Shown here one piece after another: positions 23,323-51,460 of a stretch of 64,000 bases of DNA. Under the pieces are notes generated by a model. That model was not told the DNA's origin. It saw only the letters and a list, made by a program, of their open reading frames with translations, and did not search any database. Where the stretch lies: the NCBI RefSeq assembly GCF_000737315.1, contig NZ_JMCB01000008.1, forward strand, positions 310,001 to 374,000, read 5' to 3'. Within the stretch, counting starts at the first letter, position 1; the number at the start of each line of letters is the position of its first letter. The translations under genes were made by a program, and so were the position numbers. The stretch comes from Hyalangium minutum (GTDB taxonomy: Bacteria > Myxococcota > Myxococcia > Myxococcales > Myxococcaceae).

Positions 23323-23345
23323 GGGTTCGATTCCCGCCGCTTCCA
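23323..23345 (+). repeat. tmRNA-3'-end-like att core, copy 1
   Basis: GGGTTCGATTCCCGCCGCTTCCA. Confidence 0.75.
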
Positions 23346-23517
23346 AGCAGAACAACTCGCCGCTTTGAGCCGAGTCCGCTTCTAATGAATTGACGCGTCA
23401 TCTGCGCGCTTGCGCGTCAATTGACGCGTCGACACGTCCCTTCGCCGCAGCACGGGCGCTAGGCCCGACCCTTGCAATGGGCTGGAGAAGCTTTCACAAA
23501 CGCAAGGAGCCCCTCGT

Positions 23518-26500
23518 ATGTGTTCCTCTACCAATCCCCGGGTGAAGGTCGTTCCGTGGTTCGCTCTGGCTTTGGCACTGGCGTGGATTGCCTGCGGCGG
23601 GGCATCGCAAGACGGGGACGAAGCGGTGCAACCCAAGGGGCTCAAGGTCCAGATGCTTCCAGATGCGTCCGGTGAGCAGTCGAGCCCCACGGGTTCGTTG
23701 TCCACCCCCCGTTTCGAGCACACGGCGACACTGTTGCCCTCGGGCAAGGTACTGGTTGCCGGAGGCGTTGGCCCGCCGGGCGACCTCTCCAGCGCGGAGG
23801 TGTACGACCCGGTTACTGGGGTCTGGAGTCACACGGGTAGCATGGCCACGGCCCGCATTTGTCATACAGCGACGCTGTTGGCCTCGGGCAAGGTGCTCGT
23901 CACCGGAGGAGAAGGCCAGAACGGACTGCTCGACAGCGCGGAAGTGTACGACCCGGTTACCGGGGCGTGGAGCCTCACAGACAGCATGACCACAGGCCGC
24001 AGTTGCCACACGGCAACGTTGTTGCCCTCGGGCAAGGTGCTGGTCGCCGGAGGTGGTTCGGGCGGACTGCTCGGCAGCGCAGAGGTGTACGACCCAGTCA
24101 CAGGAGTATGGACCCCCACGGGCGGCATGGTCACGGCTCGGTCTTGGCACACGGCAACGTTGTTGCCCTCAGGCAAGGTACTGATTGCCGGAGGTAGTGA
24201 TCCGAATGAACCGTTCGAGTACCTCAATAGCGCAGAGGTGTACGACCCAGTTACAGGGATGTGGACTCCCACGAACTCCATGGCCACGGCTCGGCAGTTC
24301 CACACAGCGACGGTGTTTGCTTCGGGCAAGGTGCTAGTCGTCGGAGGTTTGGGTTTGAACGACGCCAACGCGGAGGTGTATGACTCGGATACCGGACGGT
24401 GGGAGCCCACAGGCACCCCAACCATGTCCCACAACAGGCACACGGCGACGCTGTTGCCCTCAGGCAAGGTGCTGGTCGCCGGAGGTGGTGGATCGGCCAT
24501 GTTCCGCGACGGCGCGGAGGTGTACGACCCGGATACTGGGACCTGGAGCCGTATGGCGGATCTTGTCACGGTTCGTATGTTGCACACAGCGACTCTATTA
24601 CCCTCGGGCAAAGTGCTGCTCACCGGAGGCCTTAGTCGGATCCCGCTCGACACTGCTGAGGTGTACGCCCCAGATACGGGGACTTGGAACTCTACTGGTG
24701 CGTTGGCCATGGCCCGCGCCTTCCACACAGCGACGGTGTTGCCCTCAGGTAAAGTGCTGCTCGCCGGAGGCGTTGGCTCCGATGCTCGCCTTGACGGCGC
24801 GGAGGTATATGCCCCAGACACTGGGGCAAAGAGTTCTACTGCCCCACTTGGCACTGCTCGCGCCTCACACACGGCGACGCCGATGATCTCGGGCAAGGTG
24901 CTGGTAGTCGGAGGCAATGGCCCGAGTGGCCTGCTCGATAGCGCGGAGGTGTACGACCCGGCTACAGGGGAGTGGAGCACGACGGGGGCGTTGGCCGCAG
25001 CCCGTGCCTCTCACACGACAACAGTGTTGCCCTCGGGCAAGGTGCTGGTAGTCGGAGGCAATGGCCCGAGCGGCCTGCTCAACAGCGCGGAAGTGTACGA
25101 CCCAGCCACCGGAGTCTGGAGTTCTACAGGGGCTCTGGCCACGGCTCGAGCCTTCCACACAGCGACGCTGCTACACTCGGGCAAGGTGCTGATTACCGGG
25201 GGAACTGGCTCCAGCGGCCCTCTGGATAGCGCGGAGGTGTATGACCCTGTCACGGACGTCTGGAGCCCCACAGGCGCTCTGGCAACGGGGCGTGCACGAC
25301 ATACGGCGACAGTGTTGCCCTCAGGCAAGGTGCTGGTCGCAGGCGGTTGGGGCCCCAGCTACCCTGTCTCCAGCGCGGAGGTGTACGAGCCGGCTACAGG
25401 GACCTGGAGTTCCACGGGCACCCTAGCCACGGCTCGGTATTGGCACACGGCAACGCTGCTGCCCTCAGGCAAATTGCTGGTCACAGGAGGAGCGGGCTCC
25501 AATGGTCCTCTGAATAGCTCGGAGGTGTACGACCCAGGCGCAGGCTCATGGAGTTTCACGGGCACCTTGCTCACAGTTCATTATGGACACACAGCGACGT
25601 TGTTGCCCTCGGGCAAGGTGTTGGTCGCCGGAGGAGTTGGCTCTAGCGGCCCTCTGGATGGCATGGAACTGTACGACCCAGGCGCAGGAGGGTGGAGTTT
25701 TACGAGCGCTGTGATTAGACCTCTCAACAACGGTCACACGGCGACGTTGTTGCCCTCTGGTAAGGTGCTGGTCGCCGGGGGAGATGACCTAAACGATTCC
25801 ATCTCCAACGCGCAGGTGTACGACCCAGCGACTGGTGACTGGCGCCTCACGGGCGCACTGGCCACGACCCGTGCCTGGCACACGGCGACGTTGCTGCCCT
25901 CGGGCAAAGTACTGATTGCCGGAGGCAATGGACCGAACGGCCTGTTTGGCAGCGCGGAGGTGTACGACCCGGGTACAGGGGTGTGGAGCATCACAGGCAG
26001 CATGGCCACGGCTCGTGCTTGGCACACGGCGACGTTGTTGCCCTCGGGCAAAGTACTGATTGCCGGAGGGTATGGGCCGAACGGCCCACTCGATAGTGCG
26101 GAGGTGTACGATCCAACTACAGGAGGCTGGAGCATGGCGGACAGCATGGCTACAGCTCGTCAGTTTCACACGGCGACGCTGTTGCCGGATGGCAAGGTGC
26201 TGGTTGCCGGAGGTCAAGGACCGAGCAGTACCCTTTTCAGTGCGGAGGTGTATGACCCAGCCACAAGCGCCTGGAGCCCCACGAGCGCCATGTCCACGGC
26301 ACGCGTGAACCATACAGCGACGTTGCTGCCTTCGGGCAAGGTGCTGGCCGCCGGGGGTTTTGAGAACTCCAGCGTGGAGGTGTACGACCCTGTCACCAGA
26401 GCCTGGAGTTCCGCCAACTCCATGGCCGAAGCCCGAAGAATGCATACAGCGACATTGTTGCTGTCGGGCAAGGTCTTAGTCATTGGGGGCGTTGGCACGA

Positions 26501-28185
26501 ACGGTTTAGTTCACAGCGTGGAGATGTACGATCCGGCCACGGGAACGTGGAGCCCCAGGACGCCTTCACCGCTCACTTGGCCCAGGGCAACGTTGTTGCC
26601 CTCCGGGAAGGTGCTGATCACTGCAGGTGCGGCCACTACCGAGCATGACAAAGCTGAGGTGTACGAAGACACGGGAACTCGCCCGGAGTGGCGTCCTGTC
26701 ATTAACGCACCGGCCATGCAACACCCCGGAGAGACATTCCACATGACCGGTAGCCTCTTGTGTGGCCTCTCGGAGGCAAGCAGCGGTAATACTCAGAGTT
26801 CAGCCACGAATTTTCCCCTGGTGAGCTTGGTGGCGCTCGAGGGCGGAGCGCTAACACGTGTCGCGTCCCTGGACTCGTACTCTGGTACACACGTGACTGG
26901 ACGCACGCCGCAGGTGACGAGTGGCTATTACATCGTGTCCGTGATGGCTAATGGCATCCACGGGGGGCAACTGGTACTCGTGGAGGGGGCTGGCCCTGCA
27001 GCGCCTGAGCTGACCCTGCCTGAGCCTTTGGTCAACACCTCGAAGCCCGTCATGGGCGGTACGGCGCAGCCCGGTAGCAGGGTGGTGGTGTGGTTGGATG
27101 GGAAAGTAGCCGGAGCCGCGACGGCAGGTCCCCAGGGCTCCTGGCGCTTCACTCCCGTCACCGCGCTGGCTGAAGGATTCCACCGAGCCGTAACCACTGC
27201 TTCGGATGAGGTGGGCAACATAAGCCCTGACTCCGAGGCTGTCGGCTTCACGGTAGACACCGTGCCCCCAGAGTCGCCGGTGGTAGTTGAACCTGGGGAC
27301 TTCGTTGCTACCTCCACTCCTGTGATTCGTGGCACGGCGGAGCCGGGAAGCATGGTCGAGGTGCGGCTGGATGGAGAAGTGGTGAGAACAGTCAAGGCAG
27401 CTACGGATAGGACTTGGAGTTTCGCCTTAGTCACAGCGCTCGATGACGGCTCTCACTGGGCCGATGCCACTGCTCGTGATAGTGCAGGCAACATCAGCCT
27501 TGTCTCTGGGGGACTCCAGTTCACAGTAGATACTGTCCCTCCACAAGCGCCGGTGGTGACGGAGCCCAATGGCCTCGTCCCTTCTTCGACACCTGAGATT
27601 CGTGGCACGGCAGAGCCTGGGAGCACGGTGAAGGTACGGCTGAATGGAGAAGTAGCGGGAAGCGCCCTAGCGGGTGCGAACGGTGCTTGGCATCTCACTT
27701 CACTCATAGCGCTTCTAGACGGATCATACCAAGCCGAGGCCACTGCCCAAGACAAAGCAGGTCTTGTGAGCGCTAAGTCTGAGTTCCTCTCCTTCATCGT
27801 GGACACTGTGCCCCCTGAAGCGCCGGTGGTGACAGATCCTGGAGGCTTCATTACCACTCCCACCCCTGTGATTCGCGGCAAGACGGCGCCTGGGGGCTGG
27901 GTGAAGGTGTGGCTGGACGACGATGAGTTGAACGCTGAACGGAGAAAGGCAGACATGGTGGGGGATTGGCACTACACTCCAATTACAGCGCTGAGGTTCG
28001 GATCTCATTCCGTCTTCGCCATTGCCTTGGATGACGCAGGCAATCCCAGTGCTCGAACACAACACCGGTTCGCCTTCCAAACGAGCCATTATGGTTGGGG
28101 GTGTACCAGCGCCCCGGCCCTTCCCGCCACATGGGTCTTCTTGGCCATGGTTTGGTCCCTCTGCAGGCGCTACCGCGCGCGGTGA
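23518..28185 (+). CDS. Surface protein with 21 Kelch repeats, 4 Ig-like repeats and a MYXO-CTERM-like anchor
   Basis: 21 HTATLLPSGKVL-type units counted, plus 4 P..PVV..P....STPVIRGTAEPGS-type units. Ends GWGC...hydrophobic...RRYRAR. Confidence 0.9.
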   Translation: MCSSTNPRVKVVPWFALALALAWIACGGASQDGDEAVQPKGLKVQMLPDASGEQSSPTGSLSTPRFEHTATLLPSGKVLVAGGVGPPGDLSSAEVYDPVTGVWSHTGSMATARICHTATLLASGKVLVTGGEGQNGLLDSAEVYDPVTGAWSLTDSMTTGRSCHTATLLPSGKVLVAGGGSGGLLGSAEVYDPVTGVWTPTGGMVTARSWHTATLLPSGKVLIAGGSDPNEPFEYLNSAEVYDPVTGMWTPTNSMATARQFHTATVFASGKVLVVGGLGLNDANAEVYDSDTGRWEPTGTPTMSHNRHTATLLPSGKVLVAGGGGSAMFRDGAEVYDPDTGTWSRMADLVTVRMLHTATLLPSGKVLLTGGLSRIPLDTAEVYAPDTGTWNSTGALAMARAFHTATVLPSGKVLLAGGVGSDARLDGAEVYAPDTGAKSSTAPLGTARASHTATPMISGKVLVVGGNGPSGLLDSAEVYDPATGEWSTTGALAAARASHTTTVLPSGKVLVVGGNGPSGLLNSAEVYDPATGVWSSTGALATARAFHTATLLHSGKVLITGGTGSSGPLDSAEVYDPVTDVWSPTGALATGRARHTATVLPSGKVLVAGGWGPSYPVSSAEVYEPATGTWSSTGTLATARYWHTATLLPSGKLLVTGGAGSNGPLNSSEVYDPGAGSWSFTGTLLTVHYGHTATLLPSGKVLVAGGVGSSGPLDGMELYDPGAGGWSFTSAVIRPLNNGHTATLLPSGKVLVAGGDDLNDSISNAQVYDPATGDWRLTGALATTRAWHTATLLPSGKVLIAGGNGPNGLFGSAEVYDPGTGVWSITGSMATARAWHTATLLPSGKVLIAGGYGPNGPLDSAEVYDPTTGGWSMADSMATARQFHTATLLPDGKVLVAGGQGPSSTLFSAEVYDPATSAWSPTSAMSTARVNHTATLLPSGKVLAAGGFENSSVEVYDPVTRAWSSANSMAEARRMHTATLLLSGKVLVIGGVGTNGLVHSVEMYDPATGTWSPRTPSPLTWPRATLLPSGKVLITAGAATTEHDKAEVYEDTGTRPEWRPVINAPAMQHPGETFHMTGSLLCGLSEASSGNTQSSATNFPLVSLVALEGGALTRVASLDSYSGTHVTGRTPQVTSGYYIVSVMANGIHGGQLVLVEGAGPAAPELTLPEPLVNTSKPVMGGTAQPGSRVVVWLDGKVAGAATAGPQGSWRFTPVTALAEGFHRAVTTASDEVGNISPDSEAVGFTVDTVPPESPVVVEPGDFVATSTPVIRGTAEPGSMVEVRLDGEVVRTVKAATDRTWSFALVTALDDGSHWADATARDSAGNISLVSGGLQFTVDTVPPQAPVVTEPNGLVPSSTPEIRGTAEPGSTVKVRLNGEVAGSALAGANGAWHLTSLIALLDGSYQAEATAQDKAGLVSAKSEFLSFIVDTVPPEAPVVTDPGGFITTPTPVIRGKTAPGGWVKVWLDDDELNAERRKADMVGDWHYTPITALRFGSHSVFAIALDDAGNPSARTQHRFAFQTSHYGWGCTSAPALPATWVFLAMVWSLCRRYRAR

Positions 28186-28229
28186 TGGAGGGTGTCTTGG
28201 AGCATAGGGGATGCGTAAGAATGCCTGAC

Positions 28230-28525
28230 ACAAATCAGGATTGAGGCCTCGGAAGAGTATCAGGCAGCTGATTGAGCCACGCGTTGGTACGCTCCACCAC
28301 CCAGCAGTGCTGTCCTCGCCGCTGTTTCGACTCGATGCCGGGCCGCAGGATTTGGGAAGTGAGACCGCGTCAGCGCAAACCCCTGCGGTTCTTGCGTGAA
28401 GCGTACGGCTTGTCCGCATGTAGTTTGCCGGGCCGATGTCGGGGTGATCAGGGCGCTGCTTGACGTCGGGCACCGCCTACTGCAGGAGGGACCAGTTCGT
28501 GGGTGTCGTGGACTGACGGAGCCCA
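28230..28525 (-). mobile_element. IS5-family transposase relic (frameshifted)
   Basis: Fragments VHDTHEL, RHRPGKLHADK.YASRKNR, RPGIESK.R.G.H.WVVERTNAWLNQ across frames. Confidence 0.8.
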
Positions 28526-28712
28526 AGCGCACCCGAAGCCAGGTGCGGGGCCTGCGATGACCACGGGTTCCGCGATGTCGCACATGTGTCGCAGGAACCC
28601 GCGGAATGTGCTGGGACGAAACGGGACGCGGCGGGATACCGACTCCAATCATTCCGGGCGGTTACGATCTTCCAATAACGAAGGATTTCGATCCTGTCGA
28701 TCGCGACGAAGC

Positions 28713-28735
28713 GCGGGAACGAATCCCGCGCTCCA
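28713..28735 (+). repeat. Degenerate tmRNA-3'-like att core, copy 2
   Basis: GCGGGAACGAATCCCGCGCTCCA. Preceded by a block (28570-28668) homologous to the one preceding copy 4. Confidence 0.55.
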
Positions 28736-29035
28736 AAGATCGCCGTAACTTCCGCCTATGGTTATGACGAGTGCGGCTTGCCGCCCGCAGCAGAGAATGA
28801 GGTACTCTCTTGTTCAGGAGCCCAGCGGCAGAGCGGAAGTTGGTGCCACGTACACCCATCGGGGTCTTGAGGTCGAGCAAGGGACCAGGAAGAGCCATCG
28901 ACAGCGATGCTGATCCGACCCGCGCTCGCCTGATCGCCTCTGTGCACCAAGGATCGCGCCCCCCGCGATCGAAACGCCGCGCTTCCGGAAGCTCGTCTCC
29001 ACACGCACAGCACTACCTCGCCTTGCTCTGCGAGG

Positions 29036-29109
29036 AAGTGTCGTCCGGAGAGAAGAAATGCTGGAGCTAGCAGCCGGAGAGTCCCTACTCTTGGGGTAAA
29101 ACACCTGCA
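29036..29109 (+). repeat. 74-bp dispersed repeat, copy A
   Basis: 67/74 identical to 43866-43939. Confidence 0.85.
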
Positions 29110-29187
29110 CAGACGTCTTCCCCAAAGAGGACGGCAGAAGGATTGGGCCTGTGAGCACCTGCCAATTGGGGCCCCCCGAGGACGAAC

Positions 29188-29814
29188 ATGCCCCTGGAAC
29201 GAGTTGCCGCCTCCCTATTGTGCGCTCTGTTCATCTCTTGCAGCACCACCCGCCAACTCGCACCCGCCAACCCTGAAGAGCTGACCCGCTACGTTCTTCT
29301 CATCCGGGAGCTGCCCGACGGCACTGTCACCCATTCCTGGAAACCCGCAGAGGAGATGGATCTGTCGCAGTACCGATTTCTTGCCAGCACGCGTGGCTCA
29401 GCTCGGCCCATCGTGCCAGTCATGGCCGGGCGACAGCGCGACTGCGATAAAGAGAATGACGAGTGCATCGACAAATGTATGAGCCACCCTCTCGCGCCAG
29501 GGTACGGGCACATCACTTCCAACAGAAAGAAAGGTGGTAAGGCGGCTTACTGTCGCGAGCAATGCTGGCAGGCCTATCGCGACTGCCTGGAAGTCGAAAA
29601 GCTGCGCCCGCAGGAGTTTACGGCCATCGATTTCGCAACCGATTGGCTGAAGCGCCACCACAAAACAATTCTGGTGGGGAGCGTGATCACCATCGCGGGA
29701 GTTGCCTTTGTCGTGGTCTCTGCCGGAGCTGGACTGGTCATCCTTGCCCCCGTCGTGATCCTGGCCAACCCTTCGGAGATGCATGAGCCCTTCATGGCCG
29801 GAGTGTCGCCATGA
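29188..29814 (+). CDS. Cys-rich lipoprotein with C-terminal hydrophobic hairpin (candidate toxin)
   Basis: Lipobox LFISC. CDKENDECIDKCM...YCREQCWQAYRDC. TM-like tail. Overlaps the next gene (ATGA). Confidence 0.7.
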   Translation: MPLERVAASLLCALFISCSTTRQLAPANPEELTRYVLLIRELPDGTVTHSWKPAEEMDLSQYRFLASTRGSARPIVPVMAGRQRDCDKENDECIDKCMSHPLAPGYGHITSNRKKGGKAAYCREQCWQAYRDCLEVEKLRPQEFTAIDFATDWLKRHHKTILVGSVITIAGVAFVVVSAGAGLVILAPVVILANPSEMHEPFMAGVSP

Positions 29815-30404
29815 CGATTGCAAGACAGATGCTGGAGACCATGGAACTCCTGGGCAGGCACCATGAAGAGACCGCTTCCGCCGAAGAGAAAGAGCGATTC
29901 TCCATGGCGCTCGACGCACTGGGCTTCATCTTGGCCTTCGGTCAGACCTACGGCTTTGAGGAATATCGCCAAGACGTCGCGGCCCAGGGTCCGCCCGTCG
30001 TTATCGCAGCCTTCGACACGCGTGAGAAAGCGGAGAGCTGGCTGAACCACCACCCCGACCCTCCACACCACGCCAACATCTTGATTGCAGGAGAATATTT
30101 TCTCACTGCCTATGCCCCAGACCTCAACCACCGCGCGATTCTCCACGACCCTGCGTTCGCCCATTACCTCAAAGAAATGATTCAGGACGGGATTCCGGCC
30201 CCGGTCGCCACCTTCAACACCCTTGAAGAGGCCAACACATGGCTCCAGGACCAGCCTGAGCCTCCGCGTCAGGTCTTCGTCTCCGTCGCAGGCGAGTATT
30301 ACCTCGCGGTGTATCACTACAAGGTCAAACTCCGTGCGCTTTACCCCGTCTCCATGGCAGCGAAGTCGGCGCAGGGAGACGAGGCAGCGCCTCGCAGCGG
30401 GTGA
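29811..30404 (+). CDS. Hypothetical protein with internal duplication (candidate immunity/partner)
   Basis: Two homologous units: AAFDTREKAESWLNHHPDPP..IAGEYF and ATFNTLEEANTWLQDQPEPP..VAGEYY. Confidence 0.7.
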   Translation: MTIARQMLETMELLGRHHEETASAEEKERFSMALDALGFILAFGQTYGFEEYRQDVAAQGPPVVIAAFDTREKAESWLNHHPDPPHHANILIAGEYFLTAYAPDLNHRAILHDPAFAHYLKEMIQDGIPAPVATFNTLEEANTWLQDQPEPPRQVFVSVAGEYYLAVYHYKVKLRALYPVSMAAKSAQGDEAAPRSG

Positions 30405-31951: not shown

Positions 31952-31974
31952 GCGGGTTCGATTCCCGCCGCCTC
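31952..31974 (+). repeat. tmRNA-3'-end-like att core, copy 3
   Basis: GCGGGTTCGATTCCCGCCGCCTC. TGTGCCCC direct repeats at 31907 and 31919. Confidence 0.8.
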
Positions 31975-32193
31975 GGGGATGCGCCCTACCGCAGATGGGC
32001 GGCTTTTCGCACTCGCGCGGCGTCCTCCCCAGGAGGCACGCCGAACTGTCGGCGGAAGGGTGGACAACTGCCTTCTCGTCATTCAGGCGGGACTCCCAGT
32101 GCCATCCGCTGGGAGAGCAAACAGGCGATGAAGAAGGACGGCGGAGACGCGGTGCGAAACTCTCAGCAGGTCGCGCGGCTCGGGGCGTGGGTG

Positions 32194-32835
32194 TCAGTCG
32201 CCGAAACCATCCGCCCACCAAGCGAGCAGGGCCGCCGCGGAGCCTACGGCCATGCCCGGGTAGGAGCCGAGGCGCAGCCCGATGAAGGCGTTCACCTCCC
32301 GGCCTTCGGGGTTGACGTTCGACCTCTGCGTGAGCGGGAGGACCTCCAACTGCGCGCTCAAGGCGGCGAAGTCGCCGAAGTTGAGCGCCACGTGGCCACT
32401 GAAGGCGGGATAGCTCGGGACGAAGCCGCTGCCATGCTTCAGCCCGAAGAGCAGCAGGCCCGGGGCCACGTCGACGCTCAGCCAGGGGTTGAGCCAGCGT
32501 CGCAGCCGGGGCTTGATCCCGAGCATGCGCCGCGGCTCCTCGTCGTTGACGAGGAACAGGGTGCCGCCCACGGCCAGATCATGCACCTCCAGGTTGCTCA
32601 TGTAGCCGGCCTCCCAGATGAAGTTCAGGGGAGGCCGCCGGTATCCCGTGGTGGGCGCGATGTAGGCGGCGAACTCCGTCAAGGTGAAGCCCTTGCACTT
32701 GTGCACGGGACCTCCTCGCAGGCACAGCGGATCGGGAGGCGGTGTGGCGGCCTCTGGCGGGCTGGCCAGTGCGGCACCTGGGAGGACACAGAGGGACAGC
32801 AACGAGAAGAGGCGGAGGGCGTGCAGCGTTCTCAT
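32194..32835 (-). CDS. Secreted/outer-membrane hypothetical protein
   Basis: Signal peptide MRTLHALRLFSLLSLCVLPGAALA followed by amphipathic beta-strand-like segments. Confidence 0.65.
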   Translation of the reverse strand: MRTLHALRLFSLLSLCVLPGAALASPPEAATPPPDPLCLRGGPVHKCKGFTLTEFAAYIAPTTGYRRPPLNFIWEAGYMSNLEVHDLAVGGTLFLVNDEEPRRMLGIKPRLRRWLNPWLSVDVAPGLLLFGLKHGSGFVPSYPAFSGHVALNFGDFAALSAQLEVLPLTQRSNVNPEGREVNAFIGLRLGSYPGMAVGSAAALLAWWADGFGD

Positions 32836-32989
32836 AGCGGCGTCTGCCTGGAGTCCGAGCGTTCCGGCCAGGCGCTCGCGAAAGACCGTTTGTCCACTTA
32901 TAGCCCGATAACGCCCAGGCCCCGCGCATGAGACTGCCCCGGCTCCGCCCCTGCTTGAGGGAGCAACGTCCCCGGCCTCGGACGTGCAG

Positions 32990-33832
32990 TCAGAGCATCG
33001 GGAGCTCGGGCCTGGGCTCGGAGGCAAAGGCCTCGTCGATGAGCGAAATCTCCTCCCGCGTGAGTCGCAGGTCCGCGGCCCCCGCATTCTCCTCCACGTG
33101 CGCCACGCGCGAGGCTTTGGGGATGGCGAAGAGCGAGGGGCGCCGGGTGACGAAGGCGAGCGCCACCTGGCGGAGGGTGGCCCCGTGGTTGCGCGCGACC
33201 TGAACCAGCGCGCGCCCCCTGGGTGACGAGGGAGACGGGAACTGGCCGTGGCCGAGGGGGCTGTAGGCGACCATCGACACCCGGTGGTCCTCGCACCAGG
33301 GGAGGACGCGGTACTCGGTGGTGCGCTCCTCCAGGTTGTAGAGCACCTGGTTGCAGGTGATGCGCCCCTCGCCCGTGAACCCGAGCGCCTCCTCGAGGTC
33401 GTCCACGTCGAAGTTGCTCACGCCCCAGCTGCGAATCTTCCCCTGGTCCACCAGCCGGTCGAAGGCGCCGAACGTCTCCTCCAGGGGATACTTCCCCCGC
33501 CAGTGCAGCAGGTAGCAGTCCAGCCAGTCCGTGCCCAGGCGCTCCAGCGAGCGCTCACAGGCGCCCAGGGTGCCGCGGAAGCTCGCGTTGGAGGGCAGCA
33601 CCTTGGAGACGAGGAAGACCTCGTCGCGCCGGCCGGAGATGGCCTCCCCCACCATCTCCTCCACCGCGCCGGAGCCGTACATCTCCGCGGTGTCCACGTG
33701 GGTCATCCCCAGATCCAGCCCTCGGCGGAGCGCCCGGATGGCCTCCTCCCGGTGGGCCTGGTCCAGGTACCAGGTGCCCTGGCCCAGCACCGGCACCTGC
33801 CAGCCGGTGGGGCCCCACGCGTGCGTCCTCAT
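32990..33832 (-). CDS. Aldo/keto reductase
   Basis: LGQGTW, VDTAEMYG, VSKV, DCYLLHW, WGVSNF, NQVLYNL, AYSPLG, IPKAS. Confidence 0.93.
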   Translation of the reverse strand: MRTHAWGPTGWQVPVLGQGTWYLDQAHREEAIRALRRGLDLGMTHVDTAEMYGSGAVEEMVGEAISGRRDEVFLVSKVLPSNASFRGTLGACERSLERLGTDWLDCYLLHWRGKYPLEETFGAFDRLVDQGKIRSWGVSNFDVDDLEEALGFTGEGRITCNQVLYNLEERTTEYRVLPWCEDHRVSMVAYSPLGHGQFPSPSSPRGRALVQVARNHGATLRQVALAFVTRRPSLFAIPKASRVAHVEENAGAADLRLTREEISLIDEAFASEPRPELPML

Positions 33833-34022
33833 GCGGTACCTCCTCGTTGCCCGCAAAGGTTGGGCACGCCGCTCCCTCCGTGCAGGCGGAGGCCGTCACG
33901 ACCCAGCGAGGGCTCACCGGTCCCGAGGCAGAGCCGCTCTGGCCGCCGGGCCGGGCCGGACGGACCTTCAGGCGGAAGGGACGGACGCTGGCGCCGGCGT
34001 GGCCGCCGGTGAGGAGGGCAGG

Positions 34023-40583: not shown

Positions 40584-40747
40584 GAGTACCCCCGCAGGTT
40601 GACCTAGCGGGTAGGCGGTCAAAATCGGCCGGTTTTGAGCGGGACGCTATCCGACCTAGCAGGGCGTTCAAACCGGCCCCATCTAGTGGGTAAGTAAGCT
40701 TGTCTCGCGCTGGCATGGTGCCCGCGCGATCGAGAGGAGGATCGAGC

Positions 40748-41884
40748 ATGTCAGCAATCGAGTTCAGGCTTCCCAAGGGGGCGATTCTGTTCTCCAAGGG
40801 CGGGTTTTCTTACGAGTTCCGCGCGGACTTGGGCGAGGCGCATCACGGCCTGAGCCTCTTTCTCGCGCGGCGTCGCACGCCGGAAGGGCACCCTCGCGGG
40901 AAGGTGCTGCTCAAGGCGGTCGGGAGTCCGCGCGGCGGGGCTCAGGAAGGGCGGCGCTTCGACAAGGCACGGGCGAAGCTCGAAGAGCAAGTGCGTCTCG
41001 CGACGTACCTTCAGCACCCGGGCATCCTCCGTGTTCACGATCTGCACAAGACCGAATCGGCTTGGTACGTGATCACCGACCATCCGGCCGGGCAGGATCT
41101 TGACGACCTGATGGGACTCGCGACCGAACTAGACCGATGGTTCTCGCCCTTCTTCACGCTGTACGTTGGCGCGGCAGTCGCGAGTGCCCTTGAGCATGCG
41201 CACAATACAACGGACGACAAGGGGAACCCGCTCGGTATCGTCCACCGGGCGATCGACTTGGGGCACATCTTCGTCGACTGGGAGGGTCGCGTTCAGGTCT
41301 CCGACTTCGGGCTCGCACTCTCCACACTGCCGGGCCGCGTCGCCTCCACCGTCCGCCGCCCGCAGGGAGATAGCTACTTCGCGTCGCCGGAAATGCTGCT
41401 AGGCGGCAAGGTGGATGCACGCTCGGATCTCTTCGCGCTCGGGCTCGTCATGCTCGAAATGTCCACAGGGAGGAGCCTGCTCGATACCGATATGGGTGTC
41501 TCCGACGCGGCAAAGGCGGCACTCTCGAAGAAGCAGCTCGCCCGCGTGAAGCGCGCGATCAAGCGCGCCAAACTGGCCGGGTGTGAGCCGACGATCGAGC
41601 AGACGATTTGGCGCGCGGCGACCTATACGCAGGGCGACATTGACGCGGTTACAGCGAAGCTCCCCGAGAACCTGCGCGTGCCGCTGAGCAGGCTCCTTCA
41701 GCACGACGCGGCAGCGCGCTATCAGTCGGCGGGAGAGCTGGCGACCGAGCTGCGCGGCTGGCTCTCACAGGTGGACTTTGGCAAGTCTCAAGCTGCCGCC
41801 GAGCTGAAGAAGCTGAAGGCGGACGCGGGCGCGGTCATGGTCGACTTGGAGTTGCAGCGCACGGACGACAGCGCGTCGGCCTGA
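40748..41884 (+). CDS. Ser/Thr kinase-like protein (probable pseudokinase)
   Basis: Kinase fold with DFG and YFASPE, but the catalytic loop reads HRAIDLGHIF instead of HRDxKxxN. Confidence 0.8.
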   Translation: MSAIEFRLPKGAILFSKGGFSYEFRADLGEAHHGLSLFLARRRTPEGHPRGKVLLKAVGSPRGGAQEGRRFDKARAKLEEQVRLATYLQHPGILRVHDLHKTESAWYVITDHPAGQDLDDLMGLATELDRWFSPFFTLYVGAAVASALEHAHNTTDDKGNPLGIVHRAIDLGHIFVDWEGRVQVSDFGLALSTLPGRVASTVRRPQGDSYFASPEMLLGGKVDARSDLFALGLVMLEMSTGRSLLDTDMGVSDAAKAALSKKQLARVKRAIKRAKLAGCEPTIEQTIWRAATYTQGDIDAVTAKLPENLRVPLSRLLQHDAAARYQSAGELATELRGWLSQVDFGKSQAAAELKKLKADAGAVMVDLELQRTDDSASA

Positions 41885-42090
41885 GCGCCCCCCGGTGCCG
41901 GTCCCCGCTGCCCTGGGGCCGGTTGGGTCGTAGCAGCGCCCCGCCATGTTGCGTCTATGTCGCGTGAGAGCGCGGAATGGGCTGGAACGGGGCGGGACTA
42001 CAGGGGATGCGGCGGGATCTCGATTCCAAGTCGTTCCGGGCGGTTGCGAGGTAAGGGCGCGATTCCGCTGGGAGTTTCGCACCGTCCGGA

Positions 42091-42115
42091 GCGGGTTCGA
42101 TTCCCGCCGCCTCCA
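42091..42115 (+). repeat. tmRNA-3'-end-like att core, copy 4
   Basis: GCGGGTTCGATTCCCGCCGCCTCCA. ATGTYGCGT direct repeats at 41946 and 41957. Confidence 0.85.
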
Positions 42116-42124
42116 TCCCGCGAA

Positions 42125-42456: not shown

Positions 42457-42816
42457 GGTGGCCAGGACTCACCGGTCAGCTCTCTCGAACAGCCCCACAT
42501 TGCTGGAATCGCGCATGCGGCCAAGTCTCACCAGTGAGACTTTTGGAACAGTCCCCACCACCGGGAACCGGCATGCGGCCAAGTCTCACCAGTGAGACTT
42601 TTGGAACAGCGGCGCATCAGCGGGGAGCGCGACGGGCCCAGTCCACGATCGTGGACTGTCCCAGTCGTGTGCGGCGAAGACTCACGCCTGTCGATTCAAG
42701 GGGTTGGCCGCTTGTGGCTGCCTCGCGCCTCATGCCCCTTGCCCGTAACCCCTCGGCCTTCCAGCGCTTTTCTACGACAGTCTCCCAACGTAGACGAATC
42801 GTCCACGATCGTGGAC
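42457..42816. repeat. Palindrome cluster: about 58-nt tandem units with AAGTCTCACCAGTGAGACTT, plus the perfect palindrome CAGTCCACGATCGTGGACTG
   Basis: Palindrome A at 42523-42542 and 42581-42600, with a degenerate copy at 42457-42492. Palindrome B at 42639-42658, with its 16-bp core at 42801-42816. Confidence 0.9.
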
Positions 42817-42954: not shown

Positions 42955-43701
42955 ATGTTCACTCTGTTCAAGAGCAAGGAAGCCACCCGCGCCGTTCCCG
43001 AGGCCCCCTTCGTCCACCGCGCCATCCCGGACGACATCACCCTGGAGCAGCTGGGCTCCGAGCTGCGCCAACTGTTCGCCCAGGAGAACTCCAACCACCA
43101 CCGCATGGGGGAGATCTACAACCACATCGTCGAGAAGAAGCTGGCGGAGGCGGCCGGCTACAAGGACTCGACGGAGTACTTCCGCAAGGAGTTGGCGGAC
43201 CTGTCCGTGGCGTCGCTGAAGATGTACGGGGCGGTGGCGGAGAGCTTCAGCGAGCCGGTGGCGCGGCGCTTCGGCGTCACGTGCCTGTCGGTGCTGCTCA
43301 CCTACGCGGAGGCCACCGGGCTGGAGCTCAACCACGAGGAGCCGGGCCCCACCCCCATCGAGGTGCCGGACGAGCACGGGAACGTGGCGGTGCAGCCGTT
43401 CGGCGCGTGCAGCGTGGACCAGATGCGCCGGGCCCTGCAGCGCAAGCGCCGGCCCACCTCCACCAAGCCCCTGCCGCCGGAGAAGGTGGCGCTGGCCGAG
43501 CAGTACTCCGCGGCGGTGGCACAGCGCTTCCCCAAGGGCAAGGGCACCCAGTTGAAGGTCAAGCTGCGCAACCAGAAGGGCAAGGCAGTGCTCGACATCC
43601 AGGGCATCCCCCTGGAGCAGATCCTCCAGCTCGTTGAAGCGCTCTCCGCCGAGCTGCCTCCGGTGAGCACCGGAGAGAAGGCGCCGGTGCAGCCGTCCTG
43701 A
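42955..43701 (+). CDS. Hypothetical 248-aa protein downstream of the palindrome cluster
   Basis: AGGAG RBS then ATG 42955. Strongly host-like codon usage, helical, basic C-terminus. Confidence 0.8.
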   Translation: MFTLFKSKEATRAVPEAPFVHRAIPDDITLEQLGSELRQLFAQENSNHHRMGEIYNHIVEKKLAEAAGYKDSTEYFRKELADLSVASLKMYGAVAESFSEPVARRFGVTCLSVLLTYAEATGLELNHEEPGPTPIEVPDEHGNVAVQPFGACSVDQMRRALQRKRRPTSTKPLPPEKVALAEQYSAAVAQRFPKGKGTQLKVKLRNQKGKAVLDIQGIPLEQILQLVEALSAELPPVSTGEKAPVQPS

Positions 43702-43865
43702 TGTTCCGTCCGTGAGTCATGGCCCCGCGTTCCAGAAGCTCGGGACGCGGGGCCTCCTTCTCCCCGGGCTACCTGAGGCTGCCCTCATGTCCGACGCGTT
43801 CCTGCCCGCGCTGTTTCCCGGCTACGCCCGCAGCGTGCAGTGCCAGCACATCTTCCTCGACATAA

Positions 43866-43939
43866 AAGTGTCGTCCGGAGAGAGGAAATGCTGGAGCCAG
43901 CAGCCTGAGCGTCCCTACTCTTGGGATAAAACGCCTACA
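43866..43939 (+). repeat. 74-bp dispersed repeat, copy B
   Basis: 67/74 identical to 29036-29109. Ends at the ATG of the next ORF. Confidence 0.85.
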
Positions 43940-44694: not shown

Positions 44695-44883
44695 CGCGAG
44701 GCCCTCTGGTACACAGTTCATCGAGGTCCTGACCCGCTCCTCTATGGAAGCGGCGGTAATCGAAACTGCGGCTTCCAGTTCTGGGAACTCCTCTCGCCGT
44801 GAATCTGCGAGCTTCTCACCACGGCTTGGGCCCGCCCCTTCGGGCCTCAGAAAAATGGGTCGGCGTGGCGTGTGTCGCGCGGG

Positions 44884-46081: not shown

Positions 46082-46187
46082 GCGCGGTCTGTCCACCACC
46101 CGGGAGCATCACTCGGGCGGCCCCATGAGCGGCCCTCCTCGGCCCCTCTGCACCCTGGTTCCCCCTCAGAGAGAAAGGACATCCTGA

Positions 46188-46221
46188 GTGGAGGCGGCGG
46201 GAATCGAACCCGCCGCCTCCA
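46188..46221 (-). repeat. tmRNA-3'-end-like att core, copy 5, forming a perfect 13-bp hairpin
   Basis: + strand TGGAGGCGGCGGG-AATCGAA-CCCGCCGCCTCCA. The minus strand reads GCGGGTTCGATTCCCGCCGCCTCCAC. Confidence 0.85.
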
Positions 46222-46346: not shown

Positions 46347-47530
46347 GTGGGAACGCACGTGTGGGCGTACCGGCGAAGGCAGCCGGAGGGGACGGTGCTG
46401 TACGAGGCGGTGCGGGAGAACCTGGCCAGATTGCTGGCGGAAGCCAGCGAGGTAGGGCGAGGCCTGCCCCGGTACGTGGAGCGAGACTTCGCCAGGTACC
46501 TGGAATGCGGAGTGCTGGCGCACGGCTTCGCGCGGGTGCGCTGCGAGAGTTGCAAGGACGAGCTGCTTCGTCGCCTTCTCGTGCAAGGGCCGAGGGGTGT
46601 GCCCGTCCTGCAACGCGAAGCGGGCGCATGTGACGGCGGTGCACCTGGTGGAGCAGGTGCTGCCGCACGTGCCCTACCGGCAGTGGACGCTGTCCTTTCC
46701 GCACCGGGTCCGGTGGGTGCTGCTCAAGAACGTGGGACTGCTTTCGGACGTCCTCACCGTCTTCCTGCGCGCGGTGTTCGCCCTGCAGCGCCGGAGGGCA
46801 CGGCGACAGGGTCTGCGCGCTGGGCAGGTCGGAGCCGTCTCTTTCATCCAGTTCTTCGGCTCCGCCTTGCAGGTAACGCCGCACTTCCACTCGCTGGTGC
46901 CGGATGGCGTCTTCGTGCCGCGGGAGGGCAGCGTGCGCTTCGAGCCGTTGCCGCCGCCCACGCAAGGTGAGGTGGAGAGGCTGCTGAGGGTGGTGCGCCT
47001 GCTGGAGAAAAGAGGGGCCCTGCCCGCGCAAGGACCCGAGGATGCGCTGCAGGCGTACCAGGCGCACTCCCTGCAGCAACGGCTGCGCTGGACGGAGGTG
47101 GACCGCCGGCTCCCTCCCAGCAAGCAGCCCCGGTGCGCCTTGCTGGAAGGCTTCTCCCTGCATGCCAATACTCACCTCCATGCCAACGACAGGCAGGGGC
47201 TGGAGCGGCTGTGCCGCTATGGAGCGCGTGGCGCGCTGGCGCTGGAGCGCCTGTCGCGAATGGAGGATGGCCGCATCGCCTACCGCATGAAGCGCCCGCT
47301 GCCGGACGGCACCACGCACCTGCTCTTCACCGGGCTGGGACTGTTACGGCGTGTAGCGTCCCTGGTACCTCCGCCACGGGCAAACCTCACGAGGTTCCAC
47401 GGCGTCTTGGCTCCAGGCGCGCAACTGCGGCCATTTCTGGTCCCCCGAGCGGGAGGGGAGGAGAGGAGCGAGGCGCCCCAGGCAGCGGCCAGCACGGAGC
47501 CGATGAAGGAGAAGACGCCGCGAGGAGACT
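46347..47530 (+). mobile_element. IS91/ISCR-like (HUH Y2) transposase, frameshifted and 3'-truncated
   Basis: [16 protein letters not shown]...[11 protein letters not shown] zinc domain, [18 protein letters not shown] (HUH), [15 protein letters not shown]. +1 shift near 46568. Confidence 0.9.
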
Positions 47531-47766
47531 TCGCGGATCGGCAGGGCCCTTTTCCCGAGGGAATTGCGTATCCCATGCCCGAGAAGCCATTCAAGGAGCA
47601 GAGCAAGCCGCCGTGCGTCGAGGGCCGGGAAGAGGAAGTCCGGGGCGGATGCTGGATTCCCCACGCGAAGACCGCGCCCTGTTCCCGAGGCACGGCCGAG
47701 TTGCAGGGCAAGTGCTACGTGCCCGTGAAGAAGCCGGACCCGGCACCGACTTCCGTTCAGCCCTGA
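47531..47766 (+). pseudogene. Cys-rich C-terminal tail of a myxobacterial kinase-type protein, fused in frame to the IS91 fragment
   Basis: [15 protein letters not shown]...GGCW...C...GKCYVPV, similar in pattern to the tail of the 30441 kinase (GACW...C...QQACYVPV). Confidence 0.6.
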
Positions 47767-48111: not shown

Positions 48112-50190
48112 ATGACATCCATCAAATCGAAGCAGCCCTCCGCAATGCCTGTTCCCCCTCGTGCCTCCGCCGTGGAACAGAAGCCCATCACTCCCACCAG
48201 GACCACACCCAAGGCACAGACCGCCGCCGCCGCCCTGAAGGATGTTTTCGAGTCGCGTGCTCGCACGTCACCGGCCGCCCTTCGTGCCTTCGCCGTGGAA
48301 CAGAAGCCCATCACTCCCACCAGGACCACACCCAAGGCACAGACCGCAGCCGCCGCCCTGAAGGATGTTTTCGAGTCGCGTGCTCGCACGTCACCGGCCG
48401 CTCCCGCGAGCGCGTCGCCCGAGTTCTACGGTGCGGACCCGAGCACGATGGACGTCCCCGATCTCGGCGTGACCGCACGGGGACGGGACACCAGTACCGA
48501 GAGGATGATGCGGCTCCATGCCGCCGGCGTAGACGAGTTGATCATCAATCCCCGAAACGATTTCGAGAACGCCTCCAAGGCCGCCGAGAAAGCGGACAAG
48601 GAACTGGCCAAGCTCGTCGCGGGCTTTGGTCCCGCCCTGTCCAAGGAGGAACAAGACAAGGCCATCAAGGCGTTCAAGGAAACCCCACACAACGCCGAGA
48701 TCTACAAGAGAGCCGAAGAGACCGCGGACAAGCTCATCACCGCGATCAACGAGTCCCCAAAGAACCGGGACGCGGTGCCCGAAGCCTACAGAGACGATTT
48801 TGACTCGGAGGTGGCGACCGCCAAGGAACTCCTGCCTCGGCTCGCCAACACGGAGAAGGGTCAGGACGCCATCGCCGACGCCGTGGAAGCCCTGGGGACG
48901 AACGAGGAGAGTGCCGAGAAGAGCGAGAAGTTGGCCTTGCTGGCCACCGCACGCCAAGCCGTTCAAGGAGCGGATACCGCCATCGTCAAGTCCGTCAGCC
49001 AGCGTCTGCTGTCGTTGTCCAAGGACAATGCGGGCGAGGCCCAGAAGCTCTTCGACGGTTTGAAGAAGGCGGGTCCTTATCTGGGCCTCTCCGATGCGGA
49101 CGCCACGAAGCTTGGCGACAACCTCAAGGACATCCACCAGAACAAGCCCGGGGCATTGGATGCGTACAAGGAGACCATCACCCAGGCGAAGATCGATGTG
49201 CCGGGAGGCAATACCGAAGTCACACGGGACCTCTTCAAGGGCTTGGGTCTGGCCGCCACCATCGCCAGCTTCAGCTCGGGCCTGCGAGATGGAGATGTGG
49301 ATGCGGTCATCAAGACCACGTCCGAGGGACTGCAGATCGGCGCGGACGGCGCCTCACTGGTCACGGGGGTGTTGTCCGCCTCCTCCTCCAATCCCGCGAA
49401 GTATGCGTCAGTCGCCAAGGCCTTCGACAAGGTGGGAGGGGTCGCCGGAATCGTGGGCGGAGTGGCGGACTTCATCACCGCCGGCAATAGCTTCGCGGAG
49501 GGGGACTATGGCAAGGGCATCACTTCGCTGATCGCCGGGGCGGGCGGAGTCCTCTCGGGCGCGTCCGCCATCGTGTCCATTCCCGTGGTGGGACAGATCG
49601 CCGCGGGACTGCTAACGGTGGGCGGGTTCATCGGAGGCGCCATCGTCGAGGCGATCAAGGAGGCCAAGGAAGAGAAGCTCGCCGAGGACAACTCCACGTC
49701 CTTTCTGGAGGGAGGCGGCGTCCGCCCCGAGGCGGCCCGGGAACTGGCGGACCTCAGCGGCCCGGAGCACAAGAACGTGGGTCCCGCGATCGTCCAACTG
49801 GCGGAGCGCCTCAAGTTCGAACCGAGGGACTTTCTGCGCTTCATCGCCGAACAGCCTCCCGAGAAGATCGCGGGCTTTGTGGATAATGCCCTCGCCATCC
49901 CCCAGGATCCCCACAACCCGGATCGACTCGTTGAAAGCTCTTCGACCGACTACCGCTACATCGATCGCCAGGACAATCCGGTTTCCTTCGAGAAGGGACG
50001 GAAGAACCTCAGGGGTGGGAAGGACGTGAAGACTGGCAGCATCAGGCAACTGGAAGGCTACCTGAAGGACCAGAACCTCCTGCCCCCGCCCCCCCCGCCT
50101 CCCCCGCCCTCCGTGCCCAAGACGGCTCCGATCAACTTCGAGGACCTCATGGAGGTGCTCAAGGAGAAGGAGGAAGTCAAAAGCATCTGA
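48112..50190 (+). CDS. 692-aa helical hypothetical protein with a Gly/Ala-rich hydrophobic region (candidate pore-forming effector)
   Basis: Low-complexity N-terminus with a 41-aa duplication, coiled-coil core, GGVAGIVGGVAD...LLTVGGFIGGAIV, poly-Pro tail. Confidence 0.7.
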   Translation: MTSIKSKQPSAMPVPPRASAVEQKPITPTRTTPKAQTAAAALKDVFESRARTSPAALRAFAVEQKPITPTRTTPKAQTAAAALKDVFESRARTSPAAPASASPEFYGADPSTMDVPDLGVTARGRDTSTERMMRLHAAGVDELIINPRNDFENASKAAEKADKELAKLVAGFGPALSKEEQDKAIKAFKETPHNAEIYKRAEETADKLITAINESPKNRDAVPEAYRDDFDSEVATAKELLPRLANTEKGQDAIADAVEALGTNEESAEKSEKLALLATARQAVQGADTAIVKSVSQRLLSLSKDNAGEAQKLFDGLKKAGPYLGLSDADATKLGDNLKDIHQNKPGALDAYKETITQAKIDVPGGNTEVTRDLFKGLGLAATIASFSSGLRDGDVDAVIKTTSEGLQIGADGASLVTGVLSASSSNPAKYASVAKAFDKVGGVAGIVGGVADFITAGNSFAEGDYGKGITSLIAGAGGVLSGASAIVSIPVVGQIAAGLLTVGGFIGGAIVEAIKEAKEEKLAEDNSTSFLEGGGVRPEAARELADLSGPEHKNVGPAIVQLAERLKFEPRDFLRFIAEQPPEKIAGFVDNALAIPQDPHNPDRLVESSSTDYRYIDRQDNPVSFEKGRKNLRGGKDVKTGSIRQLEGYLKDQNLLPPPPPPPPPSVPKTAPINFEDLMEVLKEKEEVKSI
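48159..48401 (+). repeat. In-frame 123-nt tandem duplication
   Basis: Two near-identical units, period 123 nt (48161 vs 48284). Confidence 0.95.
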
Positions 50191-50204: not shown

Positions 50205-50833
50205 CTACCCGTGTCGGCTCAGCAGCAGCGGTGATGCGAGCCGCTGCTCCGGGTGCATGCGCAGGAGCAGGTGGATGACGCCCGTGAGTCCCGGCATCAG
50301 CCCGGGCGAGAACGCCTCCCGCGCCAGTCCGCCCACCGGGCCGCGCTCCTCCAGGCTCGAAATCAACTCCGCGTCCATCCACGCCCGGTCCGGCCCCCGG
50401 TAGCCCTCCGGGTCGATGCGCCGCGCCGTGTCCAACAGCGCCCACGTGCCCAGGTCGCCATGGCACAGCGTGTGGCTCCAGCCGAAGCCCTCGCGCGTGC
50501 TCGCCGCGGTGGCCCGCCGCAGCACGTCCAAATACCCCTCGCCCTTCGTGCGCACGTGGAGATCGCCCGCTACCAGTCCAATCCCCGTGCTGCCGTGACA
50601 CCAGGCCGCGACGGAGTCCACCGAGCTGCCCACGCGCACGTCCTTCCAGTCGCCCAGTTCCGGCCGGTACAACGACTCCTCGAAGGCGAACGCCGCGTCC
50701 GCCAGCTCCCGCCACCGCTGCCGGTCCTCCGCCGTCCCCGCCGCGCTCAGGCTCAGGCGCGCCAGGCACCAGCCAATCCCCGTCGCGCCGTGGGCCATTC
50801 CCCCAATCGCCTCGGGGAACATCGACTCCCCCA
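50205..50833 (-). pseudogene. LanC-like cyclase domain (C-terminal part of a lanthipeptide synthetase), 5'-truncated
   Basis: GMAHGATG, WCHG, LCHG, GLMPG motifs. Truncated exactly at the IS91 repeat. Confidence 0.85.
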
Positions 50834-51297
50834 AGCGGGAGGGGAGGAGAGAAGCGAGGCGCCCCAGGCAACGGCCAGCACGGAGCCGATGAAGGAGAAG
50901 ACGCCGCGAGGAGACTGGGCCGAGTTGCTGAAGAGGACGGGTTCGCCTGCGTGAGGTGTGGAGGCAGACGGCGAGTGCTGGCGTACGTGAACAAGGCAGG
51001 AGGAGTGCGAGCGATTCTGGAGCACCGGGGCCTGCCCACGGCAGGTGTGAGGCGGGCCCCGGCGCGCGAGCCCCCTCAAGCCGCGGGGTGTTGAGGCTCA
51101 AGCCGCCAGGGCCAAGAGAGCCAAGCCCCTGCCGCCCACCTCATGGGAGGGCGGCCAGGGCCGGCGTGTACTCCAAGGGGCTGCGCGGCTTCTCCACCCG
51201 CTTGGCCCACTGCTCGGGCGGCCCCCGTCAGCGGCACTCCTCTGCACCTCCTCTCCAGCCCTCACCCTCCACATGGCCTCTATCCCGCCTATACGCG
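50834..51297 (+). mobile_element. IS91-like 3' fragment with a candidate oriIS end
   Basis: 83-bp match to 47448-47530, then DWAELLKRT..FACVRCGGRRRVLAYV..AILEH to TGA near 51095. CCTATACGCG at 51288-51297. Confidence 0.75.
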
Positions 51298-51427
51298 TCT
51301 TGCTCATTTCGTTTCCGTCTCCAGTTTGGTCCTTTTTTGGTCCCCAAAAACCGGATTTGGTCCCGAAAATGCAGTCGCAGCTCCCTTCTCAGAGGGCGGC
51401 GCCTTGAAAGCGGCGGGTTGCTCAACT

Positions 51428-51460
51428 TGGGAGCGGCGGCAATCGAACCCGCCGCTTGGA
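51428..51460 (-). repeat. tmRNA-3'-end-like att core, copy 6 (degenerate)
   Basis: The minus strand reads TCCAAGCGGCGGGTTCGATTGCCGCCGCTCCCA. TTTGGTCC occurs three times, at 51325, 51336 and 51356. Confidence 0.7.

Follow-up and report, generated by a model that had tools for sequence, protein, structure and literature searches.

The transfer-messenger RNA (tmRNA) gene, ssrA, reportedly hosts both islands and prophages, tandem arrays included (Williams, 'Traffic at the tmRNA gene'). In Islander, the tmRNA gene is the most enriched integration target and 125 tandem arrays are listed (PMC4383910). Here, a 64,000-nt stretch of Hyalangium minutum DSM 14724 (contig NZ_JMCB01000008.1, positions 310,001 to 374,000; hereafter the window) was analysed, which carries seven short copies of the ssrA 3' end, referred to as cores 1 to 7. 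The cores are copies of the T arm and 3' acceptor strand of tmRNA, which is an attachment (att) core of tyrosine-integrase elements. Very probably they are decayed and rearranged att scars of ssrA-specific tyrosine-integrase prophages and islands in a strain-specific island.

The array resembles the ssrA islands known from Islander and TIGER in that the duplicated block extends from the T stem to the 3' end (the T-stem-region attP class), that the integrases concerned are tyrosine recombinases, that a displaced 3' fragment marks the end of an island and that successive elements stack. Unlike these islands, it has no intact ssrA as an anchor, none of its members carries an integrase, and its cores lie in both orientations. 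Judged by the Islander definition, the window holds fragments identical to the 3' part of ssrA, in a block running from the T stem/T loop to the 3' end, but neither an intact tRNA or tmRNA gene (tDNA) in the same orientation at the other end nor a tyrosine integrase inside. The array would fail the Islander filters, which require tDNA, integrase and correct orientation.

The closest known concept is that of the cis-mobilizable elements (CIMEs), in which integration genes are lost, att sites are kept, and a tandem layout with later arrivals results from accretion (PMC5704250). The window shares the lost integration genes and the tandem layout. CIMEs, however, keep functional attL and attR sites beside their target gene, whereas in the window most sites carry mutations, arm sites have been lost and a functional partner is not found alongside; integration and transfer genes are absent, and cores 3 and 4 form the only pair that is direct and intact. 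Salmonella genomic island 1 (SGI1) can use a secondary (ectopic) attachment site, at which tandem arrays then arise (PMC2297512). The window would be SGI1-like in the use of a non-primary site and in the array built there. Its seeding would be of this kind by analogy; an empty ectopic site resembling the core was not found in the relatives. The likeness to integrons is limited to a superficial picture of short repeats between cargo genes: the window has no intI, attI or Pc, its repeats are derived from tmRNA and not from attC (an attC-bounded unit usually being one promoterless frame, all units pointing the same way), and its units are multigenic, of mixed orientation and in one case a prophage relic. 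In Myxococcus xanthus, Mx alpha is a tandem ('polyploid') defective prophage region (PMC6070905). By description, the window is similar, being a hypervariable myxobacterial region of tandem prophage units with social, toxin and defence cargo.

Core copies and the ssrA gene

The 25-nt motif GCGGGTTCGATTCCCGCCGCCTCCA was found at five sites in the window when up to 3 mismatches were allowed, compared with none in 100 dinucleotide-preserving shuffles. Seven core copies were recognised in total, all within 23.3–51.5 kb, and no further copy was detected in the 64 kb even at up to 6 mismatches. All are intergenic; cores 1–4 lie on the plus strand and cores 5–7 on the minus strand. Six copies had been named in the original prediction, at 23323, 28713, 31952 and 42091 (+) and at 46188 and 51428 (-). 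All six are genuine, five being recovered by the motif scan and the one at 28713 by flanking homology, but a seventh at 44745–44769 (-) had been missed.

The true ssrA of H. minutum was reached by synteny, from the ssrA-adjacent M16 gene of Stigmatella to its orthologue on H. minutum contig JMCB01000032. It occupies positions 1893–2252 of locus L124 on this contig and encodes a 360-nt tmRNA (ARAGORN) with the tag ANDNVELALAA. The gene begins with GGGGGCG, and the motif is identical to its last 25 nt. The ssrA neighbourhood (M16 pair, OmpA, AhpC) is common to H. minutum and Stigmatella. Only the last 23–30 nt of the genome's own tmRNA are present in the window. Identity to ssrA begins at the T-stem GCGGG in cores 3, 4, 6 and 7 and runs to the 3' end, with cores 4 and 6 equalling the last 25–26 nt. 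No tRNA or tmRNA gene was called in the window by ARAGORN, or by Rfam at gathering score, and no tmRNA 5' acceptor strand, tag reading frame or pseudoknot was detected there by ARAGORN, Rfam or comparison with ssrA. In the classic T-loop sublocation of att sites, core binding takes place at the two halves of the T stem, as inverted sites, and crossover in the 7-nt loop.

More than 120 IMG/VR contigs contain the exact 25-mer. In about half of 120 examined loci it forms the 3' end of a full tmRNA gene (ARAGORN), and the others have it as a bare fragment. A tyrosine integrase and an HTH_17 excisionase abut the true ssrA of Stigmatella aurantiaca DW4/3-1, with the M16 peptidase pair on the other side of the gene. 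These viral loci and the Stigmatella integrase bear out what had been proposed from the letters of the window, namely that the motif is a tmRNA T arm plus 3' acceptor strand serving as an att core of tyrosine-integrase elements; the predicted GGGGGCG 5' end, the match between the core and the ssrA 3' end that had been suggested as a check, and a locus away from ssrA were found as well. Two other origins were rejected. The motif overlaps no called tRNA gene in the IMG/VR viral loci, which speaks against a tRNA source, and the window is not the ancestral ssrA locus, since the M16 protein next to ssrA and that of the window share just 25% identity. That the motif matches by chance, or is a repeat of the repetitive extragenic palindrome type spread over the genome without relation to islands, has next to no probability: nothing beyond the G+C richness of the genome would favour it, whereas the shuffles gave no match, the motif is identical to the ssrA 3' end, and the remaining 36 kb of the window, like L124 away from its ssrA region, contained no copy at up to 6 mismatches.

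In L124 897–2252, a terminator hairpin comes after the true ssrA, together with one open reading frame (ORF) of 190 aa that is low in G+C and a degenerate core, GAGGGTTCGATTCCTGCCGACTCCA. The 190-aa ORF had no Pfam match, and the arrangement is a one-gene islet without an integrase.

The cores differ in their state of preservation. Core 4 (42091–42115, +) is exact, with 0 mismatches, and core 6 (46189–46220, -) is likewise exact, 26 nt being identical to ssrA. Core 3 (31952–31976, +) matches in 23 of 25 positions and differs in the last 2 nt only. Core 2 (28713–28737, +) is degenerate (GCGGGAACGAATCCCGCGCTCCAAA), with three T-loop changes and two indels that place it below detection by the motif scan; its homology was established through about 150 nt of upstream flank. 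Mutations of the T stem or T loop affect four of the seven cores (1, 2, 5 and 7).

Cores 1, 5 and 7 have in common the variant ...CGCT(T/C)CCA. Core 1 (23321, +) reads ATGGGTTCGATTCCCGCCGCTTCCA, with 3 mismatches and the variant ending ...CGCTTCCA; core 5 (44745–44769, -) reads GCAGTTTCGATTACCGCCGCTTCCA, with 4 mismatches; core 7, at 51428 (-), reads GCGGGTTCGATTGCCGCCGCTCCCA, with 3 mismatches. The ...CGCTTCCA form, seen in cores 1 and 5, is a tmRNA 3' end in other bacteria, so that these three cores probably arrived with foreign elements, as element-borne copies. A further likeness between cores 1 and 7 is a 3' flank of about 20 nt, present at both but inverted (23321–23366, +, and 51407–51452, -), which together with the cores forms the inverted repeat I1 of 44 nt and 86% identity. 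Short repeats follow both: TTGACGCGTC occurs twice 3' of core 1, at 23390 and 23421, and GGACCAAA three times after core 7, at 51325–51363. These repeats would be P' arms stripped of their integrase genes, and core 1 resembles an attL-type junction that has core and P' arm but lacks its integrase. Next to core 5, the 3' flank AGAGGAGC bears a weak likeness to the native sequence 3' of ssrA.

A function of the cores as RNA, in the form of tRNA-like minihelices, processing signals or terminators, was considered and is very improbable. The sequence GGAGGCG precedes core 6 and yields a perfect 13-bp acceptor/T-arm-like hairpin around the T loop (46182–46221, -; z = -4.4), Rfam aligns 42055–42118 as a mini tmRNA, and the intergenic position of all cores would suit such a role. 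The Rfam alignment, however, scores 29.6 bits, below the gathering score of 47; the palindromic version of core 6 has no match in IMG/VR; and the cores, most of which are degenerate, show no fixed strand relative to the genes around them. The proposed mini tRNA-like fold of P arm plus core is not favoured (z = -0.85 and -1.13). Folding thus gave no support to a mini tmRNA or tRNA-like domain, and further homologues for covariation were not available. P-arm homology and prophage relics, described in the following, explain the cores fully.

Attachment arms and a gutted prophage

Loci L053 and L128 belong to the same IMG/VR contig, a myxobacterial prophage with the gene order helicase, accessory slot, 205-aa gene, PolA, RuvC-like, xis, int, core. 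Two segments of the window align with its att region: 41941–42124 with L053 5513–5696 (81.5% identity over 184 nt) and 28569–28667 with L053 5588–5697 (80% identity). About 150 nt upstream of cores 2 and 4 and the L053 att region are alignable three ways; that this segment might be tmRNA body was rejected by comparison with tmRNA. The arm-type motif TGTTGCRYSTATGTCGCR occurs in the window only at 28576 and 41947, within these two P arms, and is also found in the P' arms beside int in seven loci of the family. A P arm with arm motif identifies cores 2 and 4 as attR-type scars, consisting of P arm, crossover and displaced 3' end. The first is the scar of an L053-family element (28569–28737, +; P arm 28569–28712, core 2 28713–28737) and the second the attR of a gutted prophage (41941–42115, +; P arm 41941–42090, core 4 42091–42115). 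Relative to an L053/L128-type prophage, the P arm and TGTTGCRYSTATGTCGCR upstream of the displaced core are thus present at cores 2 and 4 only, whereas the int-xis module and the P' arm downstream of the attL core are absent from the window: no TGTTGCRYSTATGTCGCR arm motif lies downstream of any core.

The 10.1-kb unit between cores 3 and 4 (31952–42115) is a gutted prophage of the L053/L128 family. Of the conserved replication genes of the family, only a helicase C-terminal fragment and a homologue of the 205-aa gene survive. The latter is a relic at 35326–35976 (-), homologous to L128 5444–6117, with 81–86% nt identity to 11 family loci and 67–69% to five further loci. The helicase fragment of about 118 aa (37144–37508, -; Helicase_C, phrog_62) lacks the N-terminal ~520 aa and shows 78–80% nt identity to eight family loci. 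Both genes lie in family order and orientation, with the int end facing core 3, while int, xis, RuvC, PolA and the whole structural module are gone. The unit now carries an aldo/keto reductase gene, a TMEM175-like gene and a DUF2381/kinase cluster. This cluster was also tried as prophage cargo and rejected, the match in L143 lying beyond a tRNA-Leu gene and hence in host DNA.

Core 3 is a candidate attL of this prophage: its orientation relative to the relic genes agrees with the int-proximal end of L128, its divergence in the last 2 nt only fits an element-supplied copy, and the exactness of core 4 fits attR. The upstream side of the core that the prophage entered would then not have been ssrA.

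In the prophage accessory slot, located between the helicase and the 205-aa gene on the opposite strand, the relic holds a Schlafen/AlbA_2 gene (36140–37111, +; PF04326) and L128 a Ser/Thr kinase gene (Pkinase, L128 4004–5176).

The integrase beside the true ssrA of Stigmatella belongs to the integrase family of this prophage. A search with the family gave 671 matches at E ≤ 1e-20, and among the 120 listed every one with a named source is myxobacterial. Members adjoin ssrA in some prophages and tRNA-Leu genes in others. Integrases that are 68–100% identical and share the same arm motif (L128–L143 and L123) have ssrA, tRNA-Leu(taa) or tRNA-Leu(gag) as neighbours, which looks like target switching within one family. 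The L129 prophage lies beside a bare ssrA fragment with no ssrA within 6 kb, and L053 lies at a P-O-P' junction; these settings show that accretion at ssrA fragments does occur. No named phage relatives of the prophage family were found among deposited phage genomes.

The L053 contig is also the sole IMG/VR source of a homologue of a 197-aa protein encoded in the window (29811–30404). This protein contains an internal duplication of a ~35-aa motif, FDTREKAESWL..PPxxANILIAGEY. The only homologue found (L053 5992–6777, 42% identity) lies directly beside the L053 P arm.

Comparison with relatives and mobility of the units

Synteny of the left flank of the array, from HMG-CoA reductase to M16, a TPR protein and a 115-aa gene, extends to six relatives, namely a metagenomic Hyalangium (89% nt identity), a Logan assembly (90%), H. 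versicolor (81%), a 97%-identical strain, a Stigmatella and a 1.67-Mb contig that ends at this point. The 115-aa gene (22308–22655, +) is the last syntenic one, and the strain-specific region starts at 22656, 665 nt before core 1. Homology stops at the stop codon of this gene (22652–22655) in blastn comparisons with the first four relatives and in a tblastn comparison with Stigmatella. To its right, the metagenomic Hyalangium has an RHS-repeat (transglutaminase/DUF6531) protein of more than 3,800 aa, H. versicolor two DJ-1/PfpI genes followed by an RHS-repeat protein of more than 3,800 aa, Stigmatella trpF and regulators, the 97%-identical strain unrelated sequence, and the Logan assembly directly the 208-aa and 197-aa genes of the window. 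No core was detected by motif scan at any of these loci. Compared with the Logan assembly, H. minutum has an additional ~6.5 kb (~22660–29165), within which core 1 lies 665 nt from one edge and core 2 430 nt from the other; the genes between cores 2 and 3 (cassette B) are present in that assembly without a core on their left.

The junction at 22655/22656 is razor-sharp and hypervariable: six genomes show five different right-hand neighbours, the metagenomic Hyalangium and H. versicolor sharing the RHS-repeat protein.

Integrases were sought in the window by tblastn, for which 120 viral loci with a tmRNA core supplied 2380 ORFs, by a hidden Markov model (HMM) of 117 cognate integrases applied to all six frames with filters off, and by Pfam on the window ORFs; none was found, either intact or as a relic. 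A frameshifted IS91-family transposase (46347–47766, +; Y2_Tnp and Zn_Tnp_IS91 in two frames, Pfam) is the sole recombinase-like gene in the region, and further IS91 fragments lie at 50827–50916 and 53677–53764. The inter-core units comprise 1–12 genes on both strands, with cargo identified by Pfam as Kelch/Big_13, kinases, Schlafen, DUF2381 and IS91.

In the original prediction, the units had been regarded as an integron-like stack of self-contained, minimal cassettes mobilised in trans. The cargo as described there was recovered by Pfam, and the lack of an integrase and of a tmRNA 5' half held up in all searches (ARAGORN, Rfam, tblastn, HMM and Pfam). The stack itself was not supported: breakpoints in relatives, which were to coincide with the cores, proved unrelated to them (homology ends at 22655, and cassette B lacks a left core), and inversions, mutated cores, missing P' arms and the gutted prophage argue against minimal, self-contained units.

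This model, in which the cores are live sites and an ssrA-specific integrase from another part of the genome acts in trans to excise, shuffle or capture minimal integrase-less cassettes, in an integron-like or, more precisely, CIME-like manner, is quite improbable. It would account for the intact cores 3, 4 and 6, for the direct orientation of cores 3 and 4 with a P arm retained at attR, and for the missing integrase in cis. Elements without integration genes that keep att sites and are mobilisable after accretion are moreover a documented class (PMC5704250), and the true ssrA also bears a one-gene islet bracketed by a degenerate core. It is countered by the indel and synteny boundaries in five relatives, which lie away from the cores, and by the state of the cores themselves, four of seven being mutated in T stem or T loop and three of seven inverted. 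Inverted neighbours such as 42091/46189 do not permit excision of a circle. In addition, no P' arm motif lies downstream of any core, no family integrase from H. minutum was among the 120 listed of the 671 matches, and cassette C, which extends from core 3 to core 4, is the gutted prophage rather than a minimal cassette. It is similarly doubtful, though marginally less so, that the orphan array is a working ectopic landing pad that spares ssrA, with the 31952/42091 pair and perhaps other units excised or transferred in trans by a resident cognate integrase, as a CIME-like nursery for surface, kinase and defence cargo.

Origin of the array

Decayed att scars are thus the preferred explanation of the cores. 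The order of events and the way in which the first core came to lie away from ssrA are, as we infer them, the following. Tyrosine-integrase elements that target the T-loop region of ssrA each carry their own ssrA 3' end, from T stem to acceptor end, and integration leaves one copy of this 3' end at each end of the element. Seeding may have occurred by ectopic integration, at a secondary site or an orphan fragment, and later elements would have accreted at the cores so created. At least three ssrA-specific element lineages would have accumulated in one strain-specific island. The elements would then have lost their int/xis modules and most other genes through deletion and replacement, part of the set would have been inverted, and most cores would now be under neutral drift.

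Several observations weigh against this explanation. No intact ssrA anchors the array, the true ssrA being in a conserved neighbourhood on another contig, so that a seeding or relocating step is required, and none was observed. With four cores on the plus strand and three on the minus strand, either one or more inversions or independent seeding events must be assumed. No known element matches the arms beside cores 1, 3, 5, 6 and 7, and we infer the junction types there. The exactness of cores 4 and 6 could reflect a recent origin or retained function. Finally, the H. minutum DNA scanned for the core comprised the 64-kb window and L124 only.

Alternatively, the array may have formed at the true ssrA, and a rearrangement, for example an inversion with breakpoints inside the array and after the 115-aa gene, may have moved most of it to the present locus. 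Such a relocation is a possibility, albeit on the unlikely side. The locus is a synteny breakpoint relative to Stigmatella, whose ssrA is found about 390 kb further right, its array facing the locus; the strand of cores 1–4 is the reverse of the ancestral ssrA orientation, which an inversion would produce; on the array side of the true ssrA, contig JMCB01000032 breaks off after 1.9 kb; and core 5 has a 3' flank with a weak likeness to the native one. A single inversion, however, predicts one core orientation and the native flank on the last core, whereas cores 5–7 have the minus orientation and core 4 has an unrelated flank. No sequence similarity to the window was found in the 1.9 kb that follows ssrA, and relatives at 81–97% identity already differ at the junction without any cores. 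Ectopic integration with subsequent accretion is slightly favoured over relocation of part of the true ssrA array.

Additional features of the region

The core-bearing stretch is lower than the left flank in both overall and third-position G+C; across 23–30 kb the G+C content is 0.60–0.64, compared with 0.66–0.73 over the 17 kb to the left. Where the island is poorest in G+C, a gene at 23518–28185 encodes a 1555-aa protein that has a lipoprotein-like N terminus, four Big_13 domains and about 20 Kelch repeats with a period of 144 nt. Shortly before core 1, at 22922–23257, annotated ORFs of 54 and 56 aa form one frame with an in-frame stop at 23084–23086.

Several repeats were noted. A ~350-nt repeat, 91–93% identical, is contiguous at 54432–54787 and split at 42460–42722 plus 43686–43858; the splitting insert of about 960 nt carries most of a 369-aa ORF without known domain. 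The repeat includes a terminator-like palindrome and hairpin-bearing units of 58 nt in tandem. A segment of 74 nt is present at 29036–29109 and 43866–43939 (91% identity), upstream of two unrelated gene modules (a pair encoding a 208-aa lipoprotein-like and the 197-aa protein, and a 251-aa membrane protein), and may be a shared promoter or leader. A 123-nt tandem duplication (98%) at 48155–48400 lies inside a 692-aa ORF without known domain; this ORF is situated between 90-nt direct repeats at 47441–47530 and 50827–50916 that are linked to IS91 fragments. When the beta-lactamase gene was used as a right-boundary probe in a metagenome scan, relatives reached at most 72%; its TetR neighbour is shared by some of them, with no synteny beyond.

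Implications

The scars themselves are of a known kind and the array reveals no new mobility mechanism; what is unusual is their location far from the true ssrA. Displaced fragments of the tmRNA gene can pile up as an orphan array well away from ssrA, and island finders that require an intact tDNA and an integrase would miss such an array. For Hyalangium and its relatives, the analysis pinpoints a hypervariable junction after a conserved 115-aa gene, which differs even between 97%-identical strains, and brings to light a family of myxobacterial prophages with ssrA or tRNA-Leu as target and kinase or Schlafen genes as the content of an accessory slot.

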